This document shows, in pieces, positions 4,233 through 54,842 of a stretch of DNA of 64,000 bases. Position numbers and translations under genes: made by a program. Below the pieces are notes generated by a model. The model was not told the origin of the DNA. It made no database searches and worked only from the letters and a program-made list of their open reading frames with translations. Numbering within the stretch: the stretch's first letter is position 1; every line of letters starts with the position of its first letter. The DNA is from Anthoceros angustus (lineage: Eukaryota > Plantae > Anthocerotophyta): positions 744,001-808,000 of the forward strand of contig VJWM01000011.1 in the NCBI GenBank assembly GCA_010909165.1, written 5' to 3'.

Positions 4233-5433
4233 GTGTATATGACTATATAATGTAGAAATAAGAGTGTTGTGTCATGATTAGGGTTTAGGGTTTAGTGGAT
4301 AATGTCATTAGTGATTAATCATTATTAATTATCCAGCTGATACCCGTTCATTAGGGTTGTGTCCCTAGGTTGAATAGACATGCCTTTTCAGTTATAAGTT
4401 AAAGTTGTCTTTTCAACATATATAGTATGACTTTTCTTGATTGAAATATATATGTAATTTACTCACTATTTTCAATAATCTGTATAAATTATCATATAAT
4501 CGCCATGTCTATCCATGACAATCTTTATTTCTGTTTATGTTTATCCTTGTCTATATTGCTATGATTATTTGCAAGGTTCAGTTCTCAATTATTTACAACA
4601 AAAATATATATTTAATTTTAAATATCTAGAATGACAACAAAGGAGCCTTTTATAGTCCACTTGGACATAATTTCCTTAACAACTCATGGTGCATACCTCA
4701 ACGTGCTCAACAAAAAAGAACCCTGGAACATGGAGGAACGCCAATCACGCTTGTGTTTGAGTCAGTATCTGAATACTAAGACATGAGTCAAGTCTCCGGG
4801 TACTAAGACATGAGTCACATCTTTGAGTACGAAAACAATACTAATAGAAGAAGAAGAAGAAGGACTCTTCTAATGAGGGCCGAATGCAATATATAAACGC
4901 CAGTGTGTGGAGCATGAGTGGCACAAGAAGATGCCAGTAGGTCAGACTCCATACCCGATCATCGGTACATGTACTTGATGAGCAACAACTGAGGCCCCAG
5001 CAGCACAGCATTTGACGGCGAGCATAGACGCATGGGAACAAGTTAGAACTCATCCTGGAAGTCAGCCGTCACTGTGTCAACCTTCAGGCTCTCAACATGG
5101 AGTTGATTCTTAGGACTTGTAGAAGTCAGCAGAGCAATGCATGTCTGCAACTACCGGTGGTGAGGAACTGCCGACCTGGCACCTCCTGATGTTGCAAATC
5201 ACTGCATGATGCATTCTTTGACAGATGCTATATGCTTGGTTTGGTTGCAGCGGAGGCATCTGGGCAGGCACGATGGCGGGAGAAGTCGCTGGCTAACTCT
5301 CCGCAGTGATGCCGGTTCATGTCAGATAAGGTAAATTGGGCACGCAATGCTCATGGTTTGCTTGTAAGGAGGTAACCACGTGAAGAGGAACATCTGAGTA
5401 AGGAGTAAGGCCGTTGAGGTCCTGGACCTTCTG

Positions 5434-6560
5434 GTGCAGCCAGGGTGGTATGTGCCCGCATCTTTCTTCTATCAGGTCATCAAGAGGTGCATTGCACACA
5501 AAGATCTGGGTGCTGGCAGGGGTGTGCATACCCTGATTGTCAGAAGTGGGTATTTGGGCAGCAGATTCTTGGCCAATCACGTCATACGAATGTATGCTGC
5601 CTATGGGAGGTTGGAGGATGCGTTGCAGGTTTTGAATGGATTGGCTGCTCCCAATGCTTATTCGTGGTCCTCCAGAGTTGAGGCACATGTTGACAATGGA
5701 CAGGCCAGGCAGGCAATCGAGATCTATTTGAGGATGGGACAGTCATCCCTATGTTGGCAGATAATCATCTGTTTGTGGCAGCACTTAAGGCTTGTGCCAG
5801 TGCAGAAGATCTGACATCAGGCAGACAGGTCCATTCCGATGTCCTGAGTAGTGTGCTTGAGCCTGATGTGTTTGTTGGGAGCTGCCTGGTGGAAATGTAT
5901 GCAAGATGTGGGAGGTTGGATGATGCTCGCACAATCTTTGACAAGTTGGACTCGAGAAACGTGGTCACATGGAATACGCTGCTTGGAGGGTATGCTCAGG
6001 GTGGGCGTGGGCAACTTTGAAGCCCTTGCGCTCTATGCAAGTATGCAAGAGGAGGAATCCATCTGCCTGACCATGTCACGGTTTTGTGCCTCCTCAAAGC
6101 ATGTGCTAGCAGTGGAACACTACACCAGGGAAGGCAGCTTCATTCACAAATACAGGAAGCAGGTGTCGGATCTGAGGTGATGGTGGGGAGCTGCCTCATA
6201 TGTATGCAAGATGTGGAAGCTTGGATGATGCCCGGACTGCCTTTGACAACATGACCAGAAGAAATGTGGTGACCTGGAACGTGATGCTCGCAAGATATGC
6301 TGATGGTGGGCTAGGTGAAGAAGCCCTGTCTCTTTATGCAACTATGCAACAGGAGGGCGTTACTTCAGCAGATCACGTAACTTTTGTAAAAGCATGTAAA
6401 AGCATCGAGGCATTGGAGCAGGGAAGGCAGCTACATGACCAGGTTCAGGAGATGGGGCTGCAAGTTGACGTGGTCATTTCGAGCTGCCTGGTGGACATGA
6501 ATGCAAAGTGTGGGAGCTGAGAGGATGCCCGCAGGGTGTGCCTGCCATTGCTTCTGGGAA
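5434..6560 (+). pseudogene. PLS-class pentatricopeptide repeat gene (RNA-editing-factor type), frameshifted (pseudogene or sequencing errors)
   Basis: Successive frames give DVFVGSCLVEMYARCGRLDDARTIFDKLDSRNVVTWNTLLGGYAQ and MYARCGSLDDARTAFDNMTRRNVVTWNVMLARYA (P-L-S triplets). An in-frame stop occurs near 6518. Confidence 0.85.
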
Positions 6561-7167: not shown

Positions 7168-10100
7168 TGGGCTATGGCGGATCCACCTCTTCCTGCCGGC
7201 GCCGCGCTGGTGGACCTGCTCGAGAGCCTCGAGTCCCGCTCGCCGCAGCTGCGTGCGTTGCTTGCAGAGCTGGAGTCCGACTCGCCAAAGCGGCAGGAAC
7301 TGCCATCTTTTGATTCGTGGGGAAGCTACTTCAATTGCGACTGCCAGGACGGGGAATGTCACCACCGCGAGGAGTGGCACTGGGCGGTGCGCTTGCGTCT
7401 GCTCACCGCTATCGGCAGATGCCGTACGCTCAGGAAGATTCAACTGAATCCTCTGTGGAAGAGGGTCACAGCGTGAGGCGGGACGAGGCGTTGGCGCTCT
7501 TTTCAGGCTTGCAACACAACCTTGTGCTGGAGGAGCTGAATCTGTTTGGCTACAAGGGGTTTGGGACGGCAGCAGCGTGCCTCCAGGCACTGAGTGCCGT
7601 CATCGACAGAACTCATCGCTCACTGGACTTCCTCGGTCTGCAATCTGTGGGATTGAGTGCAGAAGGACTGGGTGCCATCGCTGCAGCCCTTGGACGCAAT
7701 GTCAGCTCTTCAGTGCTGTCCAGATTGTCTCTGTGTGGGAACGACATCAGGAATGCTGTCGGGCGCAACACTTGGCCGACATCCTTACCAAGTCGCCCAA
7801 GCTGCGCAATCTCTGGATGAGCAACATAGGCATGGACGAGGAAGGAGCCGTGGTGATTGCACAGGCCCTGGCGCATACCACTACACTGGCTGGGCTTAGA
7901 ATCGGAGATCCTGCGCCCCGGAATCCAAACCGGCCCGCGCCCATGTTCCTCGTTCCATTGCTCCAAGCTTTGGTGTGGCACACCCTGGCGGATCCTCCAG
8001 CTGCTGTTTCTGGCAATCACTCCATCACACGGCTTGTCCTTGAGTGTCCGGGAGGCCAGGAGGCTGTGGAGCCAGGGCTGGGAGAAGCCCTGGCTCAGGT
8101 GCTTGCACCAACCGGGCTGAAAGACCTCAGACTATCCAGCTTCTTCGTCACACGCGGATTGGGAGCTCTGCGGGAAAACAGCAGCATCACCAAACTCCTG
8201 GTGTTTCACTCGCGGCAGTCGGAGGATGATGACATGGATCCCATCCTGACCACCATCCTGGATGAGTGCAAGACTGTTGAGGAGGTGCAGATCCGGTTTG
8301 ACAAGCCCTTTGGTCCGTCCAGCTTCACCAAGGCGTTTTCCAAGGGTTGCTGCAGAAAACCGCAGCATCAACAGGCTGGTGTTGGATGGCTGGGATGGCT
8401 GGACGACGAGATGTTTGAAGACCTGATTCAATCCCTGTCTACCAACACCAACACCCACCTCAGGCTGGATCACATCTCCATCAAGGGCACCTCATGGGAA
8501 AAGCAAGGCAGGGGCGAACGTCTGGAGAAAGCGTTGGGAGCTGCGCGAGTGCAGCCGCAGCTGCGTGCGTTGCTCGCAGACTTGGAGTCCGAGTCGCCAG
8601 TGCTGCAAGAACTCCCATCTGTGGATTTGTGGGAAGCTATTTCGATTGCCTTTGCCAGGAGGCCTACAGGAGTGTCAACACCGGGGCAGTGGCAGTGGTA
8701 CGTACGCCTGCGCCTGCTCACAGCTATCGGCAAATGCCGGTCGCTGAGGAAGATTCATCTGAATCCTCCGGGAGGAGGGCACTTACAGCGTGAGGAGGTA
8801 GAGGCGCTGGCTCTGCTATCAGGCTTGCAACACAACCTTGTGCTGGAGGAGCTGAATCTGTATGGCTACAAGGGGTTTGGGACGGCACCCTGCCTGCAGG
8901 CATTGACTGGCGTCATGGAGAGATGCTATTTCTCATTGGACTTGCTGGTCTGCAACATCTGGGATTGAGTGCAGAAGGACTGGGTGTCATCGCTGCAGCC
9001 CTTGGACGCAACCGCAGCTCAGTGCTGTCCAGATTGTCTCTTTGTGGGAACGACATCGGGAATGCTGTCGGGGCGCAACACTTGGCCGACATCCTTACCA
9101 ACTCGCCCAAGCTCCGCAATCTATGGATGAGCAACATAGGCATGGACGAGGAAGGAGCCGTGGTGATTGCACAGGCCCTGGCGCATACCACTACACTGGC
9201 TGGGCTTAGAATCGGAGATCCTGCGCCCCGGAATCCAAACCAGCCCGCGCCCATGTTCCTCGTTCCATTGCTCCAAGCTTTGGTGTGGCACACCCTGGCG
9301 GATCCTCCAGCTGCTGTTTCTGGCAATCACTCCATCACACGGCTTGTCCTCGAGTGTCCGGGAGGCCAGGAGGCTGTGGAGCCAGGGCTGGGAGAAGCCC
9401 TGGCTCAGGTGCTTCGCACCAACCGGGCTCTGAAAGACCTCACACTATCCAGCTTCTTCGTCACACGCGGATTGGGAGCTCTGCGGGAAAACAGCAGCAT
9501 CACCAAACTCCTGGTGTTCCACTCGCGGCAGTCGGAGGATGATGACATGGATCCCAACCTGACCGCCATCCTGGATGAGTGCAAGACTGTTGAGGAGGTG
9601 CAGATCCGGTTTGACAAGCCCTTTGGTCCGTCCAGCTTCACCAAGGCGTTTTTCAAGGGTTGCTGCAGAAAACCGCAGCATCAACAGGCTGGTGTTGGAT
9701 GGCTGGGATGGGCTGGACGACGAGATGTTTGAAGACCTGATTCAATCCCTGTCCACCAACACCAACACCCACCTCAGGCTGGATCACATCTCCATCAAGG
9801 GCACCTCATGGGAAAAGCAAGGCAGGGGCGAACGTCTGGAGAAAGCGTTGGGAGCTGCGCGAGTGCAGCCGCAGCTGCGTGCGTTGCTCGCAGACTTGGA
9901 GTCCGAGTCGCCAGTGCTGCAAGAACTCCCATCTGTGGATTTGTGGGAAGCTATTTCGATTGCCTTTGCCAGGAGGCCTACAGGGAGTGTCAACACCGGG
10001 GCAGTGGCAGTGGTACGTACGCCTGCGCCTGCTCACAGCTATCGGCAAATGCCGGTCGCTGAGGAAGATTCATCTGAATCCTCCGGGAGGATGGGCACTT

Positions 10101-13100
10101 ACAGCGTGAGGGAGGTAGAGGCGCTGGCGCTGCTATCTGGCTTGCAACACAACCTTGTGCTGGAGGAGCTGAATTTGGCTACGTGGGCTTTGGGACGGCA
10201 CCCTGCCTGCAGGCATTGACTGGCGTCATGGAGATGCTATTTCTCATTGGACTTGCTGGGTCTGCAATATCTGGGATTGAGTGCAGAAGGACTGGGTGTC
10301 ATCGCTGCAGCCCTTGGACGCAACCGCAGCTCAGTGCTGTCCAGATTGTCTCTTTGTGGGAACGACATCGGAATGCTGTCGGGCGCAACATTTGGCCGAC
10401 ATCCTGAGGAATTCGATCGCCCTCCGCAATCTCTGGATGAGCAATATTGGCATGGATGAGGAAGGAGCCGTGCTGATTGCAGAGGCCCTGGCGAATACCA
10501 CCACCTGATCCGTCTCAGAATCGGAGACCCTGCGCCCCGGAATCCGGGCAGCCGGCGCCCATGTTCATTGGTCCAATTCTCGAAGCTTTGGTGTGGCACA
10601 CGCCGGATTCGGAGAATCAGGAGGATTGTCATCCTCTGCTTCTAGAGCCACTTCCAATCGCTCCATCAGGCTGCTTGTTCTTGAGTGCCCAGGAGGCCAG
10701 GAGGCTGTGGAGCCGGGGCTGGGAGAAGCCCTGGCTCGGGTGCTGCGCACCAACCGTGCTCTCACTGACCTCAGACTATCCAGCTTCTTCGTCAGACGCG
10801 GATTGAAAGCGCTACCTGAAAACAGCAGCATCACCCAACTCCAAGTAAGTCACACGCGGGATTCGCAGGATGATGACATGGATCCTATGCTGATCACGAT
10901 CCTTCAGGAGAGCAAGACTATCCAGGAGCTGCAGCTTCAGTTTGACAAGCCCTTTGGTCCATCCAGCTTCTCCAAGGCGTTTTTCCAAGGGTTGGGGGAT
11001 ACTCGTAGCATCAAGACGCTTGTGTTGGATGACTGCCGAGGATTGGATGACGACATGTTCCGGAACTTGATGCGGTCTCTGCGACGCAACTGCAACAACG
11101 TCCTGGAGAATATTTCCATCCAGAAAACAACCTGGGAAAGCGAAGGCAAAGGAATACAGATCCAGAATCTGCTCTCAAGGAACGTGCACAGAAGAAGCGC
11201 TGCTCCGCAGGGTAGGTGCCCCAAGCCAGTAGCTTGCTACCCTTGTCCTGATTTGTATCTACTGTCAGAACCCACGAACCCAGATGTATACTGACCCCTT
11301 CTCACTTGTGCAGGTTCGGAAGGAGTGCCACCACCGGTCACGGCAACTGTGGCAACCTCTGATGCCGCAGCAGGTAATGAAACTACATGAATCCATGGAT
11401 TTGATCCAACCACTTCCAAGCTGTTGTTGTTGTTGCAACTAGTTTGAATGCCTGTACCGAATGCACCACTTGATGCTGCTGCTGGCAGGCAGTCTGATGA
11501 TTGACTGATTGGCTGTTTTGTTTTCACCACAATTTCCAGTTGCTGTTCCTGAGGAGCTCAGTGCCCTGCTTGCCGAGCTCGACTCACCTTCGCCCACACT
11601 CAGTAGTCTTCCTCGTGTGAAAGCGTTTGGGCACCTGTTCAAGAGGGACGTGGAACATCCACAGGTGGAACTTGAACTGCGCATGCGCCTTGTGAAGGCT
11701 ATCGGAAAATGCCCCACACTCAGATTCATAGATCTCGACCCTCTTGGGCGTCGAAAGTACAGGGTGACGGTGGCAGAGGCGATGGCGCTGCTACAAGGCC
11801 TGAGCTCGAATGCAATAGTGGAACGGCTGGACTTGAGTGGCTTCCTTGGTTTTGGAACAGGTGAAGTCTGCGCTGCAATCGCCGCTATCTTGCAATCCAG
11901 CCGCACCTTGCAATCTCTGAATATGGGATACACTGGCATGACTGTCGAAGGACTGGCATTGCCCTATGCTGCGACATAATCGCAGCACTGTGCTTCGCAC
12001 CTTGTATCTTTCTGGAAACACGACTGTGGGAGAAGGTGTTGGAGCTCAACACCTGGCTGATATCCTGACCAGCACTCCCGCTCTTCGCAACCTGGGGATG
12101 TGGGATACAGGGATGGATGAGGCGGGAGCATTGATGATAGGGGATGCTCTGGCTCAGAACACCACACTTGACTGGCTGAACATAGGATTCAATCAAGCGT
12201 GGAGGCCAAAGCAGGCAGGGATGATGGCCACGCTGTTAGCTCGAGCATTCACCCTGGCATGCTGGACGCAGACCAGGAGGCTGAAGGTGTTGCTCCCAAG
12301 CTTCCTTCTGTTAACGAGTCTGTCACACATCTCCAGCTGGAAGTATGGGGAGCAGGACAGCAGCCTGTCATCGCTGAGTTGGGAGAAGCTGTGGCCCGCA
12401 TGCTGCGGTCGAACATGACTTTAAGGCATCTCGATGTATGTAGCTGCTTTATAAGCCAGGGATTGGAGGGGCTGTGTGACAACAGCAGCGTTATCCGTGT
12501 GACAGTCCGACATGGTAGCTCTAGTGCTAAGGAGGACTACTGCAAGCTGATGCCAATCCTGCAGAGGTGCCAGACAGTGGAAAGTTTAGAATTATATCAG
12601 GACAGTTTGGGACCTTTGGGATCATCCGACCTCCCGAAGACGTTTTTCAAATCGTTGCAGGACAATCGTTACCTCAACAGGTTGGTGTTGGATGACTGGA
12701 AAGGGTTGGACGACAATATGTTCCAAGACTTGTTGCGGGCTCTGCAAGTGAACACCAATTTGAAAAGGATATCGTTCGAGAACACTGTGTGGAAAAGTCA
12801 GGGAAAAGGAGCTGCAGTGGATGAACTACTACGCCAAAACAGGGAATACCGGAAAGCTCTGGCAGGGGCTCCAACAATGCCAGTGAAATCATGTCGCCTC
12901 ATACTTTGTGGATTTCCATATGCAGGTGAGCCACATGCTGAACCCAAAGTTTGTACATCCCCAAATGGCGTAGTTTGTGTCAGACTTCACTGCAGTTGTT
13001 TCTGTCTTCTCTACAGCTGTTTTCTTGTCTTAACGTTGTTTTCGTCTCCGGAGTGTAATCGGTGGTAAATGTTGCTGTTTCAGGGAAAACCACGATACGG

Positions 13101-15924
13101 AATACGTTGATGAGCATGCAAACACACGAAAACGATCTTGAGATCGAGGGTGAAACGATTTTGAAGCACATACCTCGAACCCTTGGGTTTGAGGTTGAGG
13201 TGATAAAAGATGGTCCAGCCTTGAGAATTACCGTTTGGGATCTTGCAGGGCACCGGGAGTTTCATGCTCTTCACGATTTTGTCTTTCCTGCTGTGAATAA
13301 CTCTTCTCTCTTCTTGTTTGTCTATAACCCGTTCAAATTTGGTGGTAATTATTCAAGTGCGGAAATGAAGGATAGAAAGGATTTTCGAGATGAATTTATA
13401 TATTGGCTTAAATTTATTGCTTCCAACTCGCGGTTAGCTCAACAGGTGAAACCTTATGTGCATGTGGTGGTAACATTTGGTGACAAGCTTGAAGGTAGGA
13501 TGTCTTCGTTGCACGGAGGAAGTGTTGGTGATGAAGAAAAGTTCATGGCTGTTGTGGAAACATCCAATGAACCCACTTTCATCAATGGACAGAGTTGGAA
13601 AGATGTGTATGCACTCGCAGCCTTATAGAGGAAAAGCTACGCCAGCTTGTCAATAAAATTGGCCCCAATTCCCAATATTTGTGAGCAGACCCGTATACAT
13701 GTGCAAAGATGGGCTGAGGATCAACAAGGTATGCCAATCATTTCTGTTGAGAAGTTTAGTGAGTTGTTTCATAGCACATGTAAGGCGGCAATAGGGCATC
13801 CACTCATCTCGAGGATTACAAATTTCTTAGAGACTTCATGGACAAAGAGGATAGCTGGAAAGTAGTAGCATCATATCTCAAGGATTCGGGAGATCATATA
13901 TTTCCAAATGTCACGACTTATGGTCATCAACCTCCGATGGTTAGGAATGGGCGTTTTGGTCAGCTGATTAGTATATTTGGTGAACGGACAATAGGCAAGA
14001 TTGGCTTCAAGTTCAAAATGGGTTCATCAGCAAATATGGGTTGAGTAGCCTTCTAAAATGTCTTTGAACAAGGTAGGGCTTGATGAAACCATTGTGAGCG
14101 AGGAACAATTCATCCAATTGATGCTTGAGTTACACCTTTGCACGAAAGTAGAGATGAGGAAGGAGAAGTGCGTTATTTTGTTCCAATATGTATGTATAAA
14201 GAAGATGGATCGAGTTGACCAGTTAGTATGGCCTTCACGGTGGTAATCTTCATGATTATATCTTTATGGGTTTGCGTCTACAATGTGATGATCAAGATTG
14301 TACATTCCTCACACCAGGATTTTTCCCTAGGTTACAGGTTTGTAACTTTTCTCAAGCTCACTATCTTTTGTTTTATGTCCTTGAAACTTCTTCTTTTGTT
14401 TATTATTATTATTACTGTTAACTAGTCTCATTGTTCCTATATATTGTAGGTACTTTTATACACATATTGTTTGACAAAAGGCTGGGTTGATGAGGAAAGA
14501 CCAATTGATTCAGAATAAAATTGGAGCCTAATGTCCTTTTAATATCTGCAGAGGCATTGGATATCTTTGTGGAATTTAATGCCAAATCGGTTGCTACATA
14601 GATATATTGGCCCGATCTACTCAAGGCTATTTAGAGTCCATGTCATTTTGAAGGAACATATTGTATCTCGATTCGGGCATTTTGTGCTTCGTATGAGGGT
14701 TGTGCAGGTTACATTGGTTGAAGGTGTTCTTGACATGAATGTGTGGCATCCCTCACTCTATGCGACATAGGAGACACGAGTGTATCCAGATAAGCTAGTC
14801 AAAGCGGTGGCTGCTGCAAAGGACCGATGCTATGCTCACTACGCATCTTGGAGAGCTATCTTGATGCGGCAGCTCTCACTCATTTTAAAGGCCAACATAG
14901 AGTATGCAACCGTGGTGGATGGTCATGTCATTTTGGGACAAAAGAGGACCTTGCAGCCGAGAGTTCCAAGGTTGAAGCTCTCAATCCTGTGAATAGTCTG
15001 TTTTTTGCTAGGTGTCCTCATTCTGCACATGTAGTTTTCAGTAGCATTACACAAGTAGGCCTTTCTTGCAAACTCGAGGTGCATATTGCAGGATCAAAAT
15101 CCACCAGCAGAGAAGCTGCTGAAACTTCTACATCCAAGTAGTGCAAGTGCGAAAGAAGAACTATTGTTGGGAGTACTTATCCTAACCATGGTGTGGAAGG
15201 AGGAAAGCAGAGGTTTGGCAATGATTGTGAGTATGGAAGGACTGGAGGAGCAGGCGGAGGGCGACTTGAAGCTCTTTTTGAGACTTTGGCGTTTGATACT
15301 GATATATTAGTGGATGGTTCTGAGAATGTGAAAGCACGATTGAGGAGCGTTGCCAAACTCCCTACCCTAGCTAAGGACGATTGCTTTCTATGTTGCATCA
15401 ATGCTCATGGGGGGATTGAAGAAGATGGCAGACAGTACATTCTCACAAGCGGAGCACGGCGGGAGAAGCTATATGTTGATGATGACATCTTGAAGCCCAT
15501 CTCGAATCCACGTGGTTGAGACAAGCCCAAGGTGTTTTGATCAATGCTTGTCGAGGCCGTAGCCTTATCACAAGCGAGAAGCTAAGGACTCTAAGTTGAG
15601 AGTAGCCAAATGTGAGCAAGAGAGCCGGAGAAGTCCGACTCCTGCACTCTGTGAAGGATTGTCTCATCTTCTTCTCGACCCGGTCATGGACAACAATCCT
15701 TTAGAGATGTTGAGAAAGGCACAAACTTTATCACAGCTTTGATGAAAGCCATCATTCGGGGTCTCGAAGAAGGGATGATGTGTCTGACATTTTAACATCG
15801 ATGATTGCCGAGGTCACGGAGATAGAAGTCAAGCTCCCAAGTGAAGCGAAGGCGCCCGAGAAGAGATCCCAATGTCGAGTTGTATTCCACACTCACAAGA
15901 AAGCTTTGCTGGTCTTTACCATAA
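7168..15924 (+). CDS. TORNADO1-like LRR-Roc-COR (ROCO) protein with a C-terminal caspase-like (peptidase C14, p20+p10) domain; multi-exon, with several apparent frameshifts
   Basis: ATG at 7168 (MADPPLPAG...). RI-type LRRs. Predicted introns: 11212-11313, 11374-11539, 12926-13083 (splits the P-loop GFPYAG|KT), 14339-14449 (after TPGFFPRLQ) and ~14990-15091. The Roc motif WDLAGHREFHALHDF matches the TRN1 family. The last exon carries caspase motifs; stop at 15922-15924. Confidence 0.8.
7230..12860 (+). repeat. Four tandem ~1.32-kb (~440 aa) copies of an entire LRR domain
   Basis: The motif QLRALLA(E/D)LES recurs at ~7245, ~8557 and ~9871, and a diverged ELSALLAELDS at ~11555. Modules end with a conserved SW(E/K)xxGxG motif. 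Confidence 0.9.
12890..14990 (+). other. Roc GTPase and COR domains of the ROCO gene
   Basis: G1 motif LILCGFPYAG|KTT, G2-like RTLG, G3-like WDLAGHREFHAL, and TPGFFPRLQ|V, all TRN1-family motifs. Confidence 0.85.
15205..15924 (+). other. Caspase-like protease domain (catalytic His codon 15406-15408, Cys codon 15549-15551)
   Basis: Across frames: ESRGLAMIVS; LEALFETLAF; DDCFLCCINAHGG; DKPKVF(L)INACRG; VKDCLIFFST..GQQSFRDVEKGTNFITALMKAI; STLTRKLCW. All are collinear with the caspase p20/p10 consensus. Confidence 0.85.
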
Positions 15925-17096
15925 GTTCACTCACTTGGCCAACGGGAGTTCGGTATGGCCATGGTCCTTCATCCGTAACTGTAATAGAGTCATCGTTCCC
16001 AACAAGACACTATTGGTGCAGCTCTAATGTGGCCTTCTCTTTTGTCCTTTTCTGTTCATTTCTTGTTCAGTGGCTCGCATACAATTTGGAGGAGAAACGA
16101 CTCCTTCTGTGGATGAACCTGTAGGCAAGAGCTTATGGACTTTAGGGAGGAAAGAACAAGGGAGTTGTGGAGCTGTAGTTGTACTCTTTGGTTTCAAGAA
16201 GCAAGTCCGGATGTAAGCGTTCCTCGATCGAATGACTTCTAGTCCTTTTGCATACTAGATGTGTGTCCATCTTCCTGAGCGGCCCAGGCGTTTGAGGCTT
16301 GCCTTTCTTTCACGATGAGAAAACACAAAGCGCGGACAGTACCTCACAGTAGCTGGTGCCAAACCCTCACCTCCAGTGTTAGAGCTACGATATTTTCGCT
16401 GTTGAAATGTGGATTAGGTTACTTTTCATGAATCACCGACAGCACAAACATGTATGTAAGTTTGTGTTGTCCTTCCGGTTGTACCAGTGACCAATCCATG
16501 TAATCTCTCTGACTGCAAGGAAAAGTGCGCTATATTCTGCCTCTGTTGAGGAGAGGCTGATCGTCGAAAGCTTTTTGCTTTGCCAACTAGTAGCTGATCC
16601 ACATAAAAGTGTGCGATGTCGCTATCGACTTCCTCATCAACATCGCCAACTCCTTAAAACAGTGAGGTTGAAATTACTTGCCTTGGTATATGTTAGACAT
16701 AAATGTCTAGTGCCTTTCAATTAGCGTAGGATTCGCTTAACGGTTGACCCAATGGCGCTTCTGTGGTTGACAGAAACGTGAAACAATGCCTGTAGCTTGT
16801 GAAATATCAGGCCTTGTCCAGCCAGCGAGGTAAAGTAAACTGCCCACAACTTCTCGATAAGGGACAACGCCATTTTGCCTTGTCTAAATTACATCAAGTC
16901 CTCGAGTGATAGCTTCTCACCCGGACCATCGGGTGGCTACTCAATTAATACCTTGCAGGTTGAATTTAGATAAAATCGGCCAGATGAAATGCTCTTGATG
17001 TAATGTGATCCTGCTGTAAGGTCGAAGAAGAACTGAATGCCCAATGCGAACGAAGAGGGCCTACATCATCATATCCCACTCTTCAAGAGCCGCTGA

Positions 17097-17420
17097 CTTT
17101 CGTGAAGGATTGTCTCATCTTCTTCTCGACCATCATGGACAACAATCCTTTAGAGATGTTGAGAAAGGCACAAACTTTATCACAGCTTTGATGAAAGCCA
17201 TCATTCGGGGTCTCGAAGAAGGGATGATGTACATTTTAACATCGATGATTGCCGAGGTCACGGAGATAGAAGTCAAGCTCCCAAGTGAAGAAGGAAGGCG
17301 CCCGAGAAGAGATCCCAATGTCGAGTTGTACTCCACACTCACAAAAAGCTTTGCTGGTCTTTACCATAAGTTCACTCACTTGGCCAACGGAGTTGTGGCC
17401 ATGTTCCTTCATCCGTAATC
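17097..17420 (+). pseudogene. Duplicated caspase p10 fragment (copy 2)
   Basis: Near-identical to 15650-15924 (GQQSFRDVEKGTNFITALMKAII...ELYSTLT); joined to copia RT sequence on its 5' side. Confidence 0.85.
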
Positions 17421-18632
17421 GTAATAGAATCATCGTTCCCAACAAGACATTGTTGGTGCAGCTTCTAATGCGGCCTTCTCATTTGTCCTTTTCTCATTTC
17501 TTGTTCGGTGGCTCGCATACAATTTGGAGAAAACAACTCCTTCGTGGATGAACTCAGGTGAGAGCTCATGGACTTTAGGGAGGAAAGAACAAGGGAGTTG
17601 TGGAGCTGTAGTTGTACTCTTTGGTTTCAAGAAGCAAGTCCGGATGTAAGCGTTCCTCGGATCAAATGACTTCTAGTCCTTTTGCATACTAGATGTGTGT
17701 CCATCTTCCTGAGCGGCCCAGGCGTTTGAGGCTTGCCTTTCTTTCACGATGAGAAAACACAAAGCGGATAAGACTTCACGAGTGGTGCCAAACCCTCACC
17801 TCCAGTGTTAGAGCTACGATATTTTCGCTGTTGAAATGTGGATTAGGTTACTTTTCATGAATCACCGACAAAGACAAACATGTATGTAAGTTTGTGTTGT
17901 CCTTCCGGTTGTACCAAAGGACCAATCCATGTAATCTCTCCGCAAGGAAAAGTGCGCTATATTCTCGCCTCATGAGGAGAGGTCGATCGTCAAAGCTTTT
18001 TGCTTTGCCAACTAGTAGTCGATCCACATAAAAGTGTGCGATGTCGCTATCGACTTCCTCATCAACATCGCCAAATCTTAAAAAGTGAGGTTGAAATTAC
18101 TTGCCTTGGTATATGTTAGACATAAATGTCTAGTGCCTTTCAATTAGCGTAGGATTCGCTTAACTGACCCAATGGCGCTTCTGTGGTTGGACAGAAACGT
18201 GAAACAATGCCCGTAGCTTGTGAAATATCAGCCTTGTCCAATGAGAGGTAAAGTAAGCGCCCACAACTTCGATAAGGGACAACGCCATTTTGCCTTGTCT
18301 AAATTACATCAAGTCCTCGAGTGATAGCTTCTCACCGGCTGCAACTGGGGTGGCTACTCAATTAATACCTTGCAGGTTGAATTTAGATAAAATCTGACGA
18401 ATGAAATGCTCTTGATGTAATGTGACAGATCCTGCTGTAAGGTCGAAGAAGAACTGAATGCCCAATGCGAAACGAAGAGGGCCTACATCTGTCATATCCC
18501 ACTCTTCGAAGAGCTGCTGCTTGACTTCTGTAAGGATTTCGTTGTCGCTTGCAAAAATGAAATTATCATCAATGTAAAGGGCAATAATGCATAGCTGGTT
18601 GTTCTTGCACAGATATAAATCGCTATCGGCGG

Positions 18633-19089
18633 AGAAGCTATATGTTGATGATGACATCTTGAAGCCCATCTCGAATCCGTGGTTGAGACAAGCCCAAGGT
18701 GTTTTGATCAATGCTTGTCGAGGCCGTAGCCTTATCACAAGCGAGAAGCTAAGGACTCTAAGTTGAGAGTAGCCAAATGTGAGCAAGAGAGCCGGAGAAG
18801 TCCGACTCACATTCGTGAAGGATTGTCTCATCTTCTTCTCGACGGTCATGGACAACAATCCTTTAGAGATGTTGAGAAAGGCACAAACTTTATCAGCTTT
18901 GATGAAAGCCATCATTCGGGGTCTCGAAGAAGGGATGATGTGTACAGCATTTTAACATCAGTGATTGCCGAGGTCACGGAGATAGAAGTCAAGCTCCCGA
19001 GTGAAGCAGGAAGGCGCTCTGAGAAGAGATCCCAATGTCCCGAGTTGTATTCCACACTCACAAGAAAGCTTTGCTGGTCTTTACCATAA
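18633..19089 (+). pseudogene. Duplicated partial caspase domain (copy 3: post-His p20 including NACRG, plus p10)
   Basis: Begins at EKLYVDDDILKP and carries aatgcttgtcgaggc (NACRG) and ELYSTLTRKLCWSLP*. It lacks the His-containing segment. Confidence 0.85.
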
Positions 19090-19614
19090 GTTCACTCACT
19101 TGGCCAACGGGAGTTCGGTATGGCCATGGTCCTTCATCCGTAATAGAATCATCGTTCCCAACAAGACATTGTTGGTGCAGCTTCTAATGCGGCCTTCTCA
19201 TTTGTCCTTTTCTCATTTCTTGTTGTGGCTCGCATACAATTTGGAGGAGAAAACAACTCCTTCGTGGATGAACACAGAGAGCTCATGGACTTTAGGGAGG
19301 AAAGAACAAGGGAGTTGTGGAGCTGGTGTACTCTTTGGTTTCAAGAAGCAAGTCCGGATGTAAGCGTTCCTCGATCGAATGACTTCTAGTCCTTTTGCAT
19401 ATTAGATGTGTGTCCATCTTCCCGAGCGCCCGTTTGAGGCTTGCCTTTCTTTCACGATGAGAAAACACAAAGCGCGGACAGTACCTCACAGTAGCTGGTG
19501 CCAAACCCTCACCTCCAGTGTTAGAGCTATGACATTTTATTGAAATGTGGATTAGGTTACTTTTCATGAATCACCGACAGCACAAACATGTATGTAAGTT
19601 TGTGTTGTCCTTCC

Positions 19615-20940
19615 GGTTGTACCAGTGACCAATCCATGTAATCTCTCTGACTGCAAGGAAAAGTGCGCTATATTCTCGCCTCATGAGGAGGCGATCGTCA
19701 GCTTTTTGCTTTGCCAACTAGTAGCTGATCCACATAAAAGTGTGCAGTATGCTGCTATCGACTTCCTGCTGTCAACATCGCCAGCCCAGTCAGCGTCTTA
19801 AAAACAGGTGAGGTTGAAATTACTTGCCTTGGTATATGTTAGACATAAATGTCTAGTGCCTTTCAATTAGCGTAGGATTCGTTTAACAGTGACCCAATGG
19901 CGTTTTCCAGGGTTGGACAGGAAACGTGAAACAATGCCTGTAGCTTGTGAAATATCAGGCCTTGTCCAGCCAGCGAGGTAAAGTAAACTGCCCACAACTT
20001 CTCGATAAGGGACAACTGCCATTTTTGCCTTGTCTAAATCTGTTACTGGGCAGTCCTCGAGTGATAGCTTCTCACCGGCTGCAACTGGGGTGGCTACTCA
20101 ATTAATACCTTGCAGGTTGAATTTAGATAAAATCGGCCAGATGAAATGCTCTTGATGTAATGTGACGGATCCTGCTGTAAGGTCGAAGAAGAATGCCCAA
20201 TGCGAACGAAGAGGGCCTACATCATCATATCCCACTCTTTCAACATGACCTGTAAGGATTTCGTTGTCGCTTGCAAAAATGAAATTATCATCAATGTAAA
20301 GGGCAATAATGCATAGCTGGTTGTTCTTGCACAGGATATAAATACTGCTATCGGCAGTAAGGGGCTCAAAACCTAAAACACGAAGCTTTGCATCTGCTCT
20401 TCCATTCCAGATGCGTGCAGACTGTTTCAGTCCATACAGCGACTTTATAAGCTCACATACCAGGTCAGGATCTAATACATAACCCTGTGGCTGCTGCATG
20501 TAGATTGTTTATTCTAGAGGCCCATTTAGAAATGCTGCTTTTACGTCCATCTGATGGACGATGAGTTTATGCTGAACAGCGAAACATAACAGAATTCTCA
20601 TTGATGTCAGCTTGACTACGGGGCTAAATGTCTCGTTATAATCGGGGCCTTGAACTTGGGTGTAGCCCCGTGCTACAAGGCGGGCCTTATATCTAGCAAC
20701 AGACCCATCAGGATGAAGCTTAAGTTTAAATACCCATTTTGAGGTAATAGCTTTCGATCCTGCAGCAATTTGACTAGCTTCCATGTGGTTATCTATCAAA
20801 GATTGGTACTCACTATCAATGGCTTGATCTACCGTTTGGGGTGAACTAAGAGCTTCCGAAATGTCATAGGCGATCAAGAGGTCTGTAATGGTAAGAGCAA
20901 TGTCGAGCCATCTCGCTAGACTACCTCGCACATTATGCAA
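19615..20940 (-). pseudogene. Copia reverse transcriptase/RNase H (frameshifted)
   Basis: KWVFKLK...ARYKARLVARGYTQVQGPDYNETFSPVVK...HQMDVKAAFLNG; KSLYGLKQSARIW; LYIDDNFI. Confidence 0.9.
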
Positions 20941-22030: not shown

Positions 22031-22099
22031 AATGAAGGAAATAGAGCTTGCAAAAGTGGCTCTATTCATCTAAGAATGACAAGAAATACACTGCTCCTC

Positions 22100-25000
22100 A
22101 AAGGATTGTGTAGACATGGGTCCACAAACATCCGAGTGTATGACTTCCAGTAAAGAGGTGGCTCTTGTAGGTGAGGGGTCATTGTAAGGCTTTTGAGTAA
22201 GTTTCCCAATTTGACTTTACAAAGAGTGTTGCATCAGTTTGAAAGTAAGCCCGTCTTTGTACAAGGCTTTATTTTTCACTACCCTATCTACATATGCTAG
22301 ACTAGGGTGACCTAATCTGATGCCATAAGAAAGAGGGACTTATCTTGGTTTAGCATCCGCTACATAGGCTTCTTTGTGTGTTTGTTGAACATGCTTGGTG
22401 GTAATGTGTAGATGATATAGGTCATGGTAAGGAAACCATTAGCTAGGACGAGTGGAACCGGGAGACTACATATGAAGTCAGTAAATGTACTGCAGTGCGA
22501 TCAGGTTAGTTTGTGTATTGAAAGCATTTCAGGCTTTGTACAAGGCTTTATTTTTCACTACCCTATCTACATATGCTAGACTAGGGTGACCTAATCTGAT
22601 GCCATAAGAAAGAGGGACTTCTGGTTTAGCATCCGCTACATAGGCTTGTGTGTTTGTTGAACATGCTTGGTGGTAATGTGTAGATGATATAGGTCATGGT
22701 AAGGAAACCATTAGCTAGGACCGGAGGTGTGGAACCGGGAGACTACATATGAAGTCAGTAAATGTACCGCAGTGCTGCGATCAGGTTAGTTTGTGTATTG
22801 AAAGCAAGTTTTTAGTCATACTAGGAACATGGAGTACCCTCTGTGAATGTTGTGTCCATGATTGAGTGCAACTTGATTTGCCCTTGGATGGACAAATCAT
22901 CATCTCCTAATAGCACAAATTGGCTGGTTGTAGAAGAGGTATAATTGCTGAACATCTCACGAGTGGCAGATGTGGTTGGTGGCACCGAGTCCGTGTACCA
23001 CATGTTAATGTCGGCTGTAAGAGATAGGCAAACGCCAATATTGTTGGAGATTTGTTGTTATTGTTGGGTCGACAACCATGTTGTTTTCTAATGGTCGCGT
23101 AGTGGCATTTGCTTGTTTCTTAGGCATTCATTCTCGAAATGCCACGGAATTGACACCAGCGTTTTCACTGTGGTGAAGAATTGTTATTGTTGGGTCCGAC
23201 AACCATGTTGCTTCTGCAGTCGCCGTGGTCACTGCTTGTTTCTTCCGGCATTCATTCTCGAAATGCCACGGAATTGACACCAATTGCGTGGGCCTTTCAC
23301 CGCCTGTGGAAGAAATGTATTTAGTTGTGCGAATATGGATGTCGAGGACCAAAACTTTGTCCCTTCCACGTCCTCTTCCTCTTCCGCGAGAGGTGTATAG
23401 AACATCTTTGTTGATTGGAGGAAGAAGGTCTTACAGATCCAACTCTGGATTTCTCTTCCAATGAGCTCCAACAACTTGTGACAAGGTGATACTTGGAAAT
23501 GCGTTAGTGTGGTACAAAGGATTGTGTAGACATGGGTCCACAAACATCCGAGTGTATGACTTCGATGAGGTGGCTCTTGTAGGTGAGGGGTCATTGTAAG
23601 GCTTTTGAGTAAGTTTCCCAATTTGACTTTACAAAGAGTGTTGCATCAGTTTGAAAGTAAGCCCGTCTTTGTACAAGGCTTTATTTTTCACTACCCTATC
23701 TACATATGCTAGACTAGGGTGACCTAATCTGATGCCATAAGAAAGAGGGACTTATCGGGTTTAGCATCCGCTACATAGGCTTGTGTGTGTTTGTTGAACA
23801 TGCTTGGTGGTAATGTGTAGATGATATAGGTCATGGTAAGGAAACCATTAGCTAGGACCGGTTTGTAACCGGGAGACTACATATGAAGTGGGGTAAATGT
23901 ACTGCAGTGCGATCAGGTTAGTTTGTGTATTGAAAGCAAGTTTTTAGTCATACTAGGAACATGGAGTACCCTCTGTGAATGTTGTGTCCATGATTGAGTC
24001 ACTTTACTTTGTCCTTGGATGGACAAATCATCATCTCCTAATAGCACAAATTGGCTGGTTGTAGAAGAGGTATAATTGCTGAACATCTCACGAGTGGATG
24101 TGGTTGGTGGCACCGAGTCCGGTACCACATGTTAATGTCGGCTGTAAGAGATAGGCAAACGCCAATATTGTTGAGATTTGTTGTTATTGTTGGGTCGACA
24201 ACCATGTTGCTTCTGCTGCAGTCGTGTGGCTCGCACCTTGTTTCTTCCATTCATTCTCGAAATGCCACGGAATTGACACCAATTGCGTGGGCCTTTCACT
24301 CGCCGTGGAAGAAATGTATTTAGTTGTGCGAATATGGATGTCGAGGACCAAAACTTTGTCCCTTCCACGTCCTCTTCCTCTTCCGCGAGAGGTGTATAGA
24401 ACATCTTTGTTGATTGGAGGAAGAAGGTCTTACAGATCCAACTCGGCTGGATTTCTCTTCCAACAGAGCTCCAACAACTTGTGACAAGGTGATACTTGGA
24501 AGTAACGTTGCTTGTGAGCTGACAAAAGTTCGATAACTTGCAGGCAATGAAGTTAGTAGGACAATAGACGCTTTCAACTCTGTTAGCGTTTCTCCAGCAG
24601 CTGCTAATCTTGCTCTTAAGGTTCGAAACCTATGTATATGGTGTTCCACGGTCTTATTGTCTTTCATGCGAAGTGAGTAGAAAACACGTGGCTTGATAAG
24701 AGACATAGAATCTTTTGTAGCAAACATGTCTTGGAATACCTTCCAAACATTGTGTGTGTTGCTTGCCCTTGAGTATGTTGCATCAGTTTGAAAGTAAGCC
24801 CGTCTTTGTACAAGGCTTTATTTTTCACTACCCTATCTACATATGCTAGACTAGGGTGACCTAATCTGATGCCATAAGAAAGAGGGACTTCTTTGGTTTA
24901 GCATCCGCTACATATAGGCTTGTGTGTTTGTTGAACATGCTTGGTGGTAATGTGTAGATGATATAGGTCATGGTAAGGAAACCATTAGCTAGGACCTAAT

Positions 25001-53008: not shown

Positions 53009-54842
53009 ATGAGATCATCTGGCATGGCAGGGAGGCGGCCCTCGCTGCTCCTCCTGCTGGCCCTAGGCCTGCTGCTGCCGAGCGTGGCGCTGGCCGCGGA
53101 ATTGTTCCAGGAGCTCAGGCTGGTGGCAGACGCGAGAGGGAGGCACTTGGCGGTGGAGGAGGAGGAGGATCGGGAAGGCCTGGAGGGGACGCTGACGCTG
53201 AGTCTGACGCATCGAGATCACCCGGACTCCCCCTTCAGCTCCGGCAGCGGCAGCGATGCGCTGCGGGAGCGGCTGGAGCGGGACCGGAGGCGGGTGGAGG
53301 GGATCATGTCCCGCGTGGACAACATGGTGAGCTTGCAGGCAGGCGGCTACGGCGGTGATCGAGACCCGGCCGGGAAGAAGACCAAGAAGGAGAAGAAGAA
53401 GCACAAGAGGAAGCACGCGGTGGAGTACAGGAAGTCTTCCGCCGGGGGCAATGTCGGGTTCGAGGGCGCCGTGGTGTCAGGCTTGTCTGCCGGGAGCGGG
53501 GAGTACTTCGTCACGCTGGGCATCGGCACGCCGCAGGCCAAGACAGCCTTGGTGATGGACACAGGGAGCGACGTGCTCTGGCTCCAGTGCGCTCCTTGCC
53601 GGGTAAAATCAATCAATCCCCGCCTCTGCCATAGCCACTCTCCTTCTGCCATAGGTTTGGTGCAGCAATTGGTGCGGTGAGAGTGTAGGTCCTGAAATTA
53701 TCCGATCTGGCTGCTGCTGCTGCTCCACAGGATTGCTACAACCAGAACGGGGCCATCTTCCAGCCGAAGCAATCCGGGTCGTACCGCACGCTCTCGTGCG
53801 GCTCCAAGCAGTGCCAGCTGGTGGACGAGCGCAGCTGCGCCAAGAACGTGTGCCTGTACGAGGTGAACTACGGGGACGGGAGCTTCACGGTCGGCGATTT
53901 CTCCACCGAGACGCTCACCCTGACGGCCAAGGGAGGCAAGGAGTTCCTGGTGAAGAACGTGGCATTCGGGTGCGGGCATGACAACGAGGGCCTCTTCGTG
54001 GGAGCCGCGGGCCTGCTCGGGCTGGGCCGGGGCGCGCTCTCCTTCCCGTCGCAGGTAGGCTGGATCGTGGGCAACGTCTTCTCCTACTGCCTGGTGGACC
54101 GGGAGAGCCTCGGCTCCAGCTCCCTCTCCTTCGGCCAGTCTGCCATCCCGCAAGGTGAGTCCCATCGTCCATCCGCCTTTCTCCTCTTCAGCCGGACTCC
54201 TCTTCGGCAACTGATCGAAGTTGCTTCGCTCGTCATCATCAACAAGCGCGGCCATGGCCGCCGCAATTCCTGCCCAGCCCAGGGCCTGCCTGATGTGGGA
54301 TAATCCATGGTGCATTTGCAGGCGCGCTCTTCACGCCACTCCTCACCAACCCCAAGGTGAAGACGTTCTACTACGTGGGGCTGGTGGGAATCAGCGTGGG
54401 CAAGGTCCAGGTGCCCGTCCCCGCCGCCTCCTTCGCCCTCTCCGCTTCCGGGACGGGAGGCGTCATCATCGACTCGGGGACGTCCGTCACCCGGCTGCCG
54501 TCCGCCGCCTACACCGCCGTGCGCAACCAGTTCGTGAAGATGGCGGCCGCCGACCTGGGCCAGCCCTCCCTCTCCTTCTCCCTCTTCGACACCTGCTACG
54601 ACCTCGGGCAGCGGCAGAGCGTGCAGGTCCCCGTGCTCAGCCTGCTCTTCCAGGGCGGCGTGGAGGTGCCGCTCCCCGCCCGGAACTACATGGTGCAGGT
54701 GGATGCCCAGGGCACCGTCTGCTTCGCCTTCGCCCCCACCACCGGCCCGCTCTCCATCATCGGCAACATCCAGCAGATGAGCATCCGAATAGTGCACGAT
54801 GTGGCGGGATCCCGCCTCGGCTTCGCCCCATCCCAATGCTAG
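53009..54842 (+). CDS. A1 aspartic protease (nepenthesin/ASPG1-like), 3 exons (53009-53602, 53731-54154, 54322-54842)
   Basis: Signal peptide; VVSGLSAGSGEYFVTLGIGTP; catalytic motifs VMDTGSDVLW and IIDSGTSVT; IIGNIQQ; canonical splice sites. Confidence 0.95.

Follow-up and report, generated by a model that had tools for sequence, protein, structure and literature searches.

Related systems and the Anthoceros angustus locus

Caspase domains are among the ~24 C-terminal effector domains reported for bacterial conflict proteins with a leucine-rich repeat (LRR)-AP-GTPase(Roc)-COR layout (Kaur, Burroughs, Iyer, Aravind 2021, eLife, PMC8195603), and in Runella a Roc-COR-CHAT protease cleaves a neighbouring gasdermin, freeing the pore (Johnson et al. 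2021/2022, bioRxiv 10.1101/2021.06.07.447441). The plant protein TORNADO1 (TRN1) consists of ribonuclease inhibitor (RNI)-type LRRs and Roc-COR, with no kinase (PMC4104024), and Roc-COR is presented, in the account of Gotthardt 2008 given by the same review (PMC4104024), as a nucleotide-dependent dimerisation device. Here, a single locus at about 7174-16470 (+ strand) is described from the hornwort Anthoceros angustus, with the domain order RNI-type LRRs, Roc, COR-like region, linker and caspase domain. It lies in the window, that is, the whole stretch of 64,000 nt that was analysed (contig VJWM01000011.1, 744,001-808,000, + strand; all coordinates below are those of the window). With moderate confidence, the stretch 12890-15924 is taken as the 3' half of a single transcribed gene that extends over about 7174-16470 (+ strand) and belongs to an LRR-Roc-COR-caspase family, its frame breaks being mostly assembly error and the fusion largely intact. 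The family, with a linker between COR and caspase, is a plant one, probably of hornworts.

The bacterial conflict proteins share with the window gene N-terminal fast-evolving LRRs, Roc and COR, a possible C-terminal caspase and multiple paralogs per genome. They are, however, prokaryotic and described by computation only, whereas the window gene is a spliced nuclear plant gene, and its protease has its closest similarity to canonical animal-type caspases and to caspase open reading frames (ORFs) of bryophytes. The Runella system is similar in having Roc-COR fused to a caspase-like protease, as is also found here, and a bacterial-type gasdermin (in the window, a gasdermin-like candidate) encoded nearby; its protease is of the CHAT type and part of an operon, whereas the window has a caspase of the Peptidase_C14 type and a gasdermin-like gene 20 kb away on the other strand, its cleavage being only proposed. 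In view of these two bacterial precedents (PMC8195603; bioRxiv 10.1101/2021.06.07.447441), the word novel, applied to the fusion in an earlier sequence-only reading, is too strong. What is new here is the land-plant host and the canonical caspase-type domain, the layout being already known from bacteria. Literature searches found no paper on a plant or hornwort Roco-caspase, a moss caspase-NLR (nucleotide-binding LRR protein) or a hornwort gasdermin.

TORNADO1, compared by its published description, resembles the first three quarters of the window gene, with RNI-type LRRs N-terminal of Roc-COR and no kinase, and the label TORNADO1-type is apt to this extent. However, TRN1, which functions in leaf patterning, stops after COR, whereas in the window gene a caspase follows COR-B and LRR modules of ~1.3 kb are duplicated. 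With NLRs and with the apoptosome or inflammasome, the layout has in common an LRR sensor, a nucleotide switch and a death effector activated by oligomerisation; it differs in that the switch is a Ras-like GTPase and the protease is within the receptor polypeptide instead of being recruited via CARD/DD adaptors. No NB-ARC or NACHT domain was found in any ORF of the locus. The proposal of an NLR-like receptor with a ROCO switch is favoured indirectly by the nearest caspase relatives, which adjoin NB-ARC-LRR ORFs in other plant-like contigs.

Relatives with the Roc-COR-caspase fusion

The fusion is best seen in two relatives. The first is L007, an 8.7-kb contig from an unrelated public run that carries P0009, one of the weak matches of the whole-library search described below. 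It has an exon ending in ...TFLTPGFFPRLQ directly before GT, an intron of ~115 nt at the exact position of the window intron 14338-14449, and then one unbroken ORF of 458 codons that runs from COR-B through the linker to the end of the caspase. The second is a pair of Nothoceros aenigmaticus Trinity transcripts (P0010 and P0011, EukProt), which start inside COR-B and run into a complete caspase, their COR-B being 38% identical to that of L007 over 100 aa (E 6e-16). Because of this ORF and these transcripts, the fusion of Roc-COR and caspase is, judged from sequence, real for the gene family, and the claim that both belong to one gene layout holds.

The caspase part of L007 matches caspase-3/6/7 with E values down to 4e-13. 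Its AlphaFold model has a predicted local distance difference test score (pLDDT) mostly of 75-95 in the core and low in the inter-subunit loop and the C-terminal third, and in Foldseek it is matched by procaspase-7, caspase-6 and Sf-caspase-1 (E 1e-16 to 1e-14, target-normalised TM score 0.70-0.83). A caspase fold with large and small subunits is thus found in the model of the relative, not in that of the window protein, for which p10 motifs were aligned. Intact relatives reach Pfam C14 at 1.9e-31 (P0011), 1.1e-27 (P0009) and 2.1e-33 (P0002).

A whole-library HMMER search with the p20 piece (1.84 billion representatives) gave nine weak matches, the best 42-45% identical over ~80 aa, with no close relative and no full-length family member. 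As called, the nearest caspase relatives are stand-alone ORFs of 262-382 aa. On their plant-like contigs, P0002, P0004, P0006 and P0007 directly precede NB-ARC-LRR ORFs of the same strand, and a conserved ORF of ~240 aa often separates the caspase from the NB-ARC ORF. Since P0009 and the Nothoceros transcripts are of the Roco type and the other caspases stand beside NB-ARC-LRR genes, one protease domain is combined with two kinds of receptor scaffold. Among 185,579 bacterial and archaeal genomes, a pattern scan detected no close relative of the window caspase, a metagenome scan with a caspase profile gave 13 short contigs, none of them with Roc, COR or NB-ARC flanks, and word-index protein searches with the Roc exon or the p20 piece had no match in a length range that excluded full-length proteins.

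Four plant-like contigs from metagenomes or SRA runs (L001, L005, L021 and L022) carry the caspase ORF, the ~240-aa ORF and NB-ARC-LRR on one strand, in tandem in L001. The ~240-aa ORF (LDVVLFHGYEF...WY.AALSSW) has no Pfam match and is possibly hydrolase-like; it was also tested as a gasdermin in these four contigs and is not gasdermin-like.

Gene layout, transcription and domains

All domains are colinear on the + strand, as read from motifs and reading frames, and the locus is divided as follows:

7174-12925, + strand: 5' part, with a candidate ATG at 7174 (MADPPLP...), RNI-type LRRs and two introns, ending in the first half of the P-loop
7242-11059, + strand: tandem LRR modules of ~1.3 kb, internal repeats that are 80-90% identical
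12926-13083, + strand: GT-AG intron splitting the P-loop codon (GFPYAG/KT), with an RNA joint
13084-13628, + strand: Roc GTPase exon, with the P-loop (...GKTT), switch II WDLAGHREF (13236) and a G4-like TFGD
13629-14337, + strand: COR-A-like region (EIIYF...VINLRWL), ending in TFLTPGFFPRLQ
14338-14449, + strand: GT-AG intron of phase 0, with an RNA joint, its position matching that of the L007 intron
14450-14988, + strand: COR-B-like region and start of the linker (...IDILARST..., ...FCASYEGCAG VTLVEGVL..., YAHYASW)
14989-15091, + strand: putative GT-AG intron of 103 nt, a candidate from sequence and reading frames
15092-15560, + strand: end of the linker and caspase p20 part (SRGLAMIVSMEG in frame 2, ...RLEALFETLAFD...CFLCCINAHGG, ...DKPKVF / INACRG)
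15561-15924, + strand: inter-subunit linker and caspase p10 part (DCLIFFST, SFRDVEKGTNFITAL, DILTSMIAEV, STLTRKLCWSLP), with the stop codon at 15922-15924
15925-16470, + strand: probable 3' untranslated region, RNA-contig depth being zero after ~16470
17090-20243, + strand: two more tandem partial copies of the caspase 3' part with downstream sequence (17090-18630 and 18627-20243)

The motifs on which the sequence-only reading was built (GFPYAG/KT, WDLAGHREF, TPGFFPRLQ and DQNPPAEKLLK) were all read directly where it had placed them, on the + strand. It had missed at least 20 frame breaks between 13.6 and 15.9 kb, because of which the exons cannot be read off the ORFs, as well as the tandem triplication of the caspase part and an ATG at 15186.

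Three read runs under one species label were found, of which X1 was taken as DNA, as it covers introns, and X2 as RNA, as it contains spliced joints. Four GT-AG introns are confirmed by X2 RNA contigs (~11211-11313, ~11371-11539, 12926-13083 and 14338-14449), the third being spanned by a 980-nt RNA contig with 255 nt on the shorter side. X2 RNA depth extends from 11100 to ~16470 and is then zero; transcription therefore includes the caspase part, and the end of the locus is near 16470. Over the caspase part, RNA depth reaches the level of the LRR part.

In the LRR part, the ORF at 8923-9729 has PDB sequence matches to ribonuclease inhibitor (down to 6e-7) and to other RNI-type LRR proteins (best 2.9e-8), and the LRR of NOD2 is also among the PDB sequence matches of this part. 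The tandem modules suggest, from their sequence, a recent expansion of the sensor part. The Roc exon has a frame that is unbroken for 180 codons and passes Pfam Roc (1.1e-6, 29.3 bits, with a cut-off of 27). It is nearest to Atlas Roc clusters (0.91, 189 shared features) and is matched by the Roc domain of LRRK2 in the PDB (0.0072). The P-loop and DxxG expected of a ROCO protein were both read directly (GFPYAGKT and WDLAG), with GFPYAG at 12910-12925 and KT at 13084-13091 on either side of the RNA-confirmed intron.

The region after Roc contains EIIYF...VINLRWL and, at 14311-14337, TPGFFPRLQ, which together with their position we take to fit COR. In frameshift-aware alignments the window aligns to intact relatives over COR-A (13922-14340) and COR-B (14521-14923); the COR-A-like region matches the L007 exon at 1e-8 (tblastn), and the COR-B-like region aligns with exon 2 of L007 and with P0010 and P0011. 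These similarities weakly indicate a COR domain directly C-terminal of Roc.

The caspase domain of the window copy

The catalytic His-Cys dyad is found in the window, with the His codon at 15406-15408 in CCINAHGG and the Cys codon at 15549-15551 in INACRG, the two motifs being in different frames as assembled. In frameshift-aware alignments, CFLCCINAHGG, INACRG, DCLIFFST, SFRDVEKGTNFITAL, DILTSMIAEV and STLTRKLCWSLP followed by the stop align with the large and small subunits of the relatives. Pieces of the window remain below the Pfam C14 cut-off (0.0028, 17.8 bits for the p20 piece; 0.0057, 16.8 bits; and 0.17). By general knowledge of caspases, conserved R-x-G and SFR...GT.F motifs go with cleavage after Asp, and their conservation here suggests, by analogy, a protease that cuts after Asp.

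The 3' part of the caspase is present in three tandem copies that are ~92% identical (15457-17086, 17090-18630 and 18627-20243), the unit being the last ~460 nt of the caspase coding sequence and ~1.1 kb of downstream sequence. RNA-contig depth over 16473-17050 is 0 to <1. An older caspase 3' fragment at 33440-34300 (+ strand) is ~80% identical to copy 1 and has an internal deletion. The open C-terminal p10 frame (...DDVYSILTSVIAEV...ELYSTLTRKLCWSLP and stop) is kept in copy 3, not in copy 1. A copia reverse-transcriptase fragment (YIDDNFIFASDNEIL...) was also observed at 18358-18640 (- strand), at the boundary of copies 2 and 3.

Frame breaks: assembly error or decay

The frame breaks are distributed within exons over the whole stretch from COR-A to p10. 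In the COR-A-like region they are found near 13625, 13810-13821, 13997, 14050, 14140 and 14241, and the COR-B-like region has ~8 frameshifts as assembled. In the p20 part, breaks are found near 15240 and at 15505-15538, and the in-frame stop is a TGA (15517-15519); the p10 part is broken near 15682, 15757 and 15891 and has two in-frame stops, TGA 15597 and TAG 15603. A single ORF through the caspase domain is therefore absent as assembled, with three in-frame stops and at least six frame shifts over 15240-15891, two of which are repaired by read-supported indels.

Many of these breaks are corrected by the reads. Read-supported indels are present in the COR-A-like region at 13810, 13819, 13821 and 14140, and RNA contigs have insertions in the COR-B-like region at 14512, 14669, 14706 (+2), 14731, 14763 and 14939. 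Those at 14512, 14706, 14731, 14763 and 14939, together with 15682 (-1) and 15757, sit at the shifts predicted by homology and have the right sign; in the caspase part, RNA contigs drop one base at 15682 and add an A after 15757, and the frame predicted by the homologs is regained. The read contigs differ from the window mostly by indels of 1-2 nt, with few or zero substitutions (eight gaps and no other letters over the 158 nt of 14685-14842; nine gaps and one other letter over 14055-14249), and the local difference between the assembly and the read-based contigs is ~2-3%. Such indel-dominated differences with few substitutions point to sequencing or assembly error rather than divergence, and we infer that most of the at least 20 breaks are assembly indel errors, not lesions. 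With 12 listed read-supported indels applied in a script for measuring ORF lengths, 50 further indels being left out, open stretches merged into ORFs of 139 aa (13629-14041), 123 aa (14771-15138) and, for all of p10, 118 aa (15606-15959).

Several results weigh against the reading of a largely intact fusion gene. Tandem copy 3 (18.6 kb) has stops identical to TGA 15517, TGA 15597 and TAG 15603, and the string around the latter two, TGAGAGTAG, is present in read-based DNA contigs; random assembly error therefore fails to account for these three stops, which may be real, as far as the copies and contigs indicate. The RNA contigs over the caspase carry substitutions and may come from near-identical paralogs; some of these contigs are copy-3-like, and near-identical paralogs are accordingly expressed, so that the window copy may or may not be intact. 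L007 (1141-1977) has the His (MGHGG) but no catalytic Cys, with FFVISGHG where FINACRG is expected, and some family members may, from their sequence, be pseudo-proteases. For COR, Pfam gave no match on the frame-broken window pieces, the homologous L007 exon scored 0.015 with COR-A (15.6 bits, below the cut-off of 35.3), no PDB sequence match was found, and the model of the L007 COR-B segment is of low confidence (pLDDT 66), with no Foldseek match below E 0.1. Furthermore, none of the listed RNA contigs bridges 14970-15092, the single transcript across the junction being a prediction.

A tentative alternative that retains some weight is a decayed, still-transcribed pseudogene, in which the fusion of the family is real, the window caspase is dead and the 3' end was rearranged by partial tandem duplication. 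It would account for the stops shared with copy 3 and for TGAGAGTAG in the DNA contigs, and it agrees with a copy 1 that is without 2 nt before ELYSTLT when compared with copies 3 and 4, and with a neighbourhood rich in gene fragments and transposon pieces; the older copy at 33.4 kb is open at the second stop site. However, the listed corrections regain the homologous frame (15682, 15757 and 14706-14763), and differences by indels only are what assembly error, rather than decay, typically leaves. Neutral decay would also not be expected to give frame-restoring pairs of breaks, as seen at 15519/15538 and 15594/15609, and the caspase part has no lower RNA depth than the LRR part.

Two ways of removing the stops were considered and rejected. 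An intron in the p20-p10 linker that would take out 15597 and 15603 would be 47 nt long and out of frame, and it would remove or misframe DCLIFFST. Nuclear RNA editing was rejected, as RNA editing in hornworts is known from the organelles.

The junction between COR-B and caspase

In the favoured reading of one LRR-Roc-COR-caspase gene, COR-B and caspase are joined either by a short intron or by continuous coding sequence. The sequence-only reading had the caspase exon begin at an AG acceptor near 15091, and DQNPPAEKLLK does begin at 15092 after the AG at 15090-91, which is a candidate for this boundary; for its donor near 14990, a GT at 14989 is frame-consistent but absent from the joints listed from the read data. 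Splicing from GT 14989 to AG 15090-91 would connect frames 1 and 2 in phase 0, and the RNA depth of the bin 14881-15079 is compatible with zero coverage of 14989-15091. No splice joint between 14449 and 15920 is among the X2 joints listed, and L007 has no equivalent of this intron. An intron at 14989-15091 is thus plausible as a prediction from sites and frames, the alternative being the L007 arrangement, with a single exon reaching from 14450 to the stop, plus an extra indel error.

It is very improbable that the locus holds two genes, namely a TORNADO1-like LRR-Roc-COR gene ending before ~15090 and an independent caspase gene starting from the ATG at 15186, given the L007 and Nothoceros fusion evidence. 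The ATG is found just 5' of the caspase core, the nearest caspase relatives are stand-alone ORF calls and the missing RNA bridge agrees with such a split. Against it, both L007 and the Nothoceros transcripts encode COR-B and caspase in one ORF, the two sides of the junction have similar RNA depth, and only ~250 nt separate the end of COR-B homology from the caspase core, with an open frame throughout (14794-15138 in frame 1 and 15059-15307 in frame 2). The earlier statement that neither an independent ATG nor a promoter-sized gap separates the parts is correct for the gap, whereas an ATG does exist.

An assembly chimera, that is, a Roco gene joined to a caspase-bearing repeat in an error-prone, repeat-rich region, is likewise highly unlikely, since the same domain order is found in L007 and the Nothoceros transcripts and homology to L007 exon 2 continues across the join, even though the region differs locally by ~2-3% from the read-based contigs, its caspase 3' part is tandemly repeated and DNA-contig depth is almost nil over 14682-15278.

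Gasdermin-like neighbour and proposed mechanism

Downstream of the Roco-caspase gene, two gasdermin-like features were found:

36000-36893, - strand: bacterial-type gasdermin-like ORF of 297 aa, a candidate substrate (Atlas 0.96, Bact_GSDM clusters, 201-207 shared features)
33005-33730, - strand: decayed second gasdermin-like copy, head-to-head with the caspase fragment at 33440-34300 (+ strand)

The first of these is ~20 kb downstream of the Roco-caspase gene and on the opposite strand, and has no Pfam or PDB sequence match. For the gene product, a mechanism is proposed in which the LRRs would bind a ligand and two caspase domains would be brought into contact by GTP-dependent dimerisation of Roc-COR. 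As caspases become active on dimerising, such proximity-induced dimerisation would activate the protease. Once active, it would cleave a death effector, for which the gasdermin-like protein encoded 20 kb downstream is the most plausible candidate by analogy with the Runella Roc-COR-CHAT system. As a speculative and rather unlikely extension of this analogy, hornworts, and perhaps other bryophytes, might have a pyroptosis-like death in which an LRR-Roc-COR-caspase protein senses a pathogen directly, dimerises and cleaves a bacterial-type gasdermin of the same cluster; such a pathway would be the eukaryotic equivalent of the Runella system, and its receptors a class of plant immune receptor other than NLRs.

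The common view is that plants have neither true caspases nor gasdermins and that their intracellular immunity depends on NB-ARC receptors. An expressed, spliced plant family with a canonical caspase on LRR-Roc-COR would overturn part of this picture, and the gasdermin neighbour, together with the relatives linked to NB-ARC-LRR genes, would place the bacterial logic of sensor, switch, protease and gasdermin in land plants. ROCO biology would also gain a dimerisation-activated enzyme as an output of Roc-COR. The value of the window copy itself is lower, as several paralogs exist and this one, as assembled, may or may not be intact.

Surroundings of the locus

The window is eukaryotic, plant-like DNA, with copia and PIF/Harbinger elements, pentatricopeptide (PPR)-like repeats and a TAXi-type aspartyl protease. 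The PPR-like repeats (VVTWN..., LLKACAS...) are found at 5398-6517 (+ strand), just upstream of the Roco gene, in a frame that is broken several times as assembled. A tandem array at 22099-31315 has units of ~1.1-1.5 kb that are 90-99% identical, and an ORF within it (26973-27851, - strand) matches a retrotransposon Pol beta-barrel domain. The gene for the TAXi-type aspartyl protease is GC-rich and spans 53009-54842 (+ strand) in three ORFs of different frames; it was looked at as a control for assembly quality, and either introns or indel errors may account for its frame changes. The mobile elements include an intact-looking PIF/Harbinger DDE transposase ORF of 463 aa (43978-45372, - strand) and a copia gag ORF of 313 aa (1874-2818, - strand).

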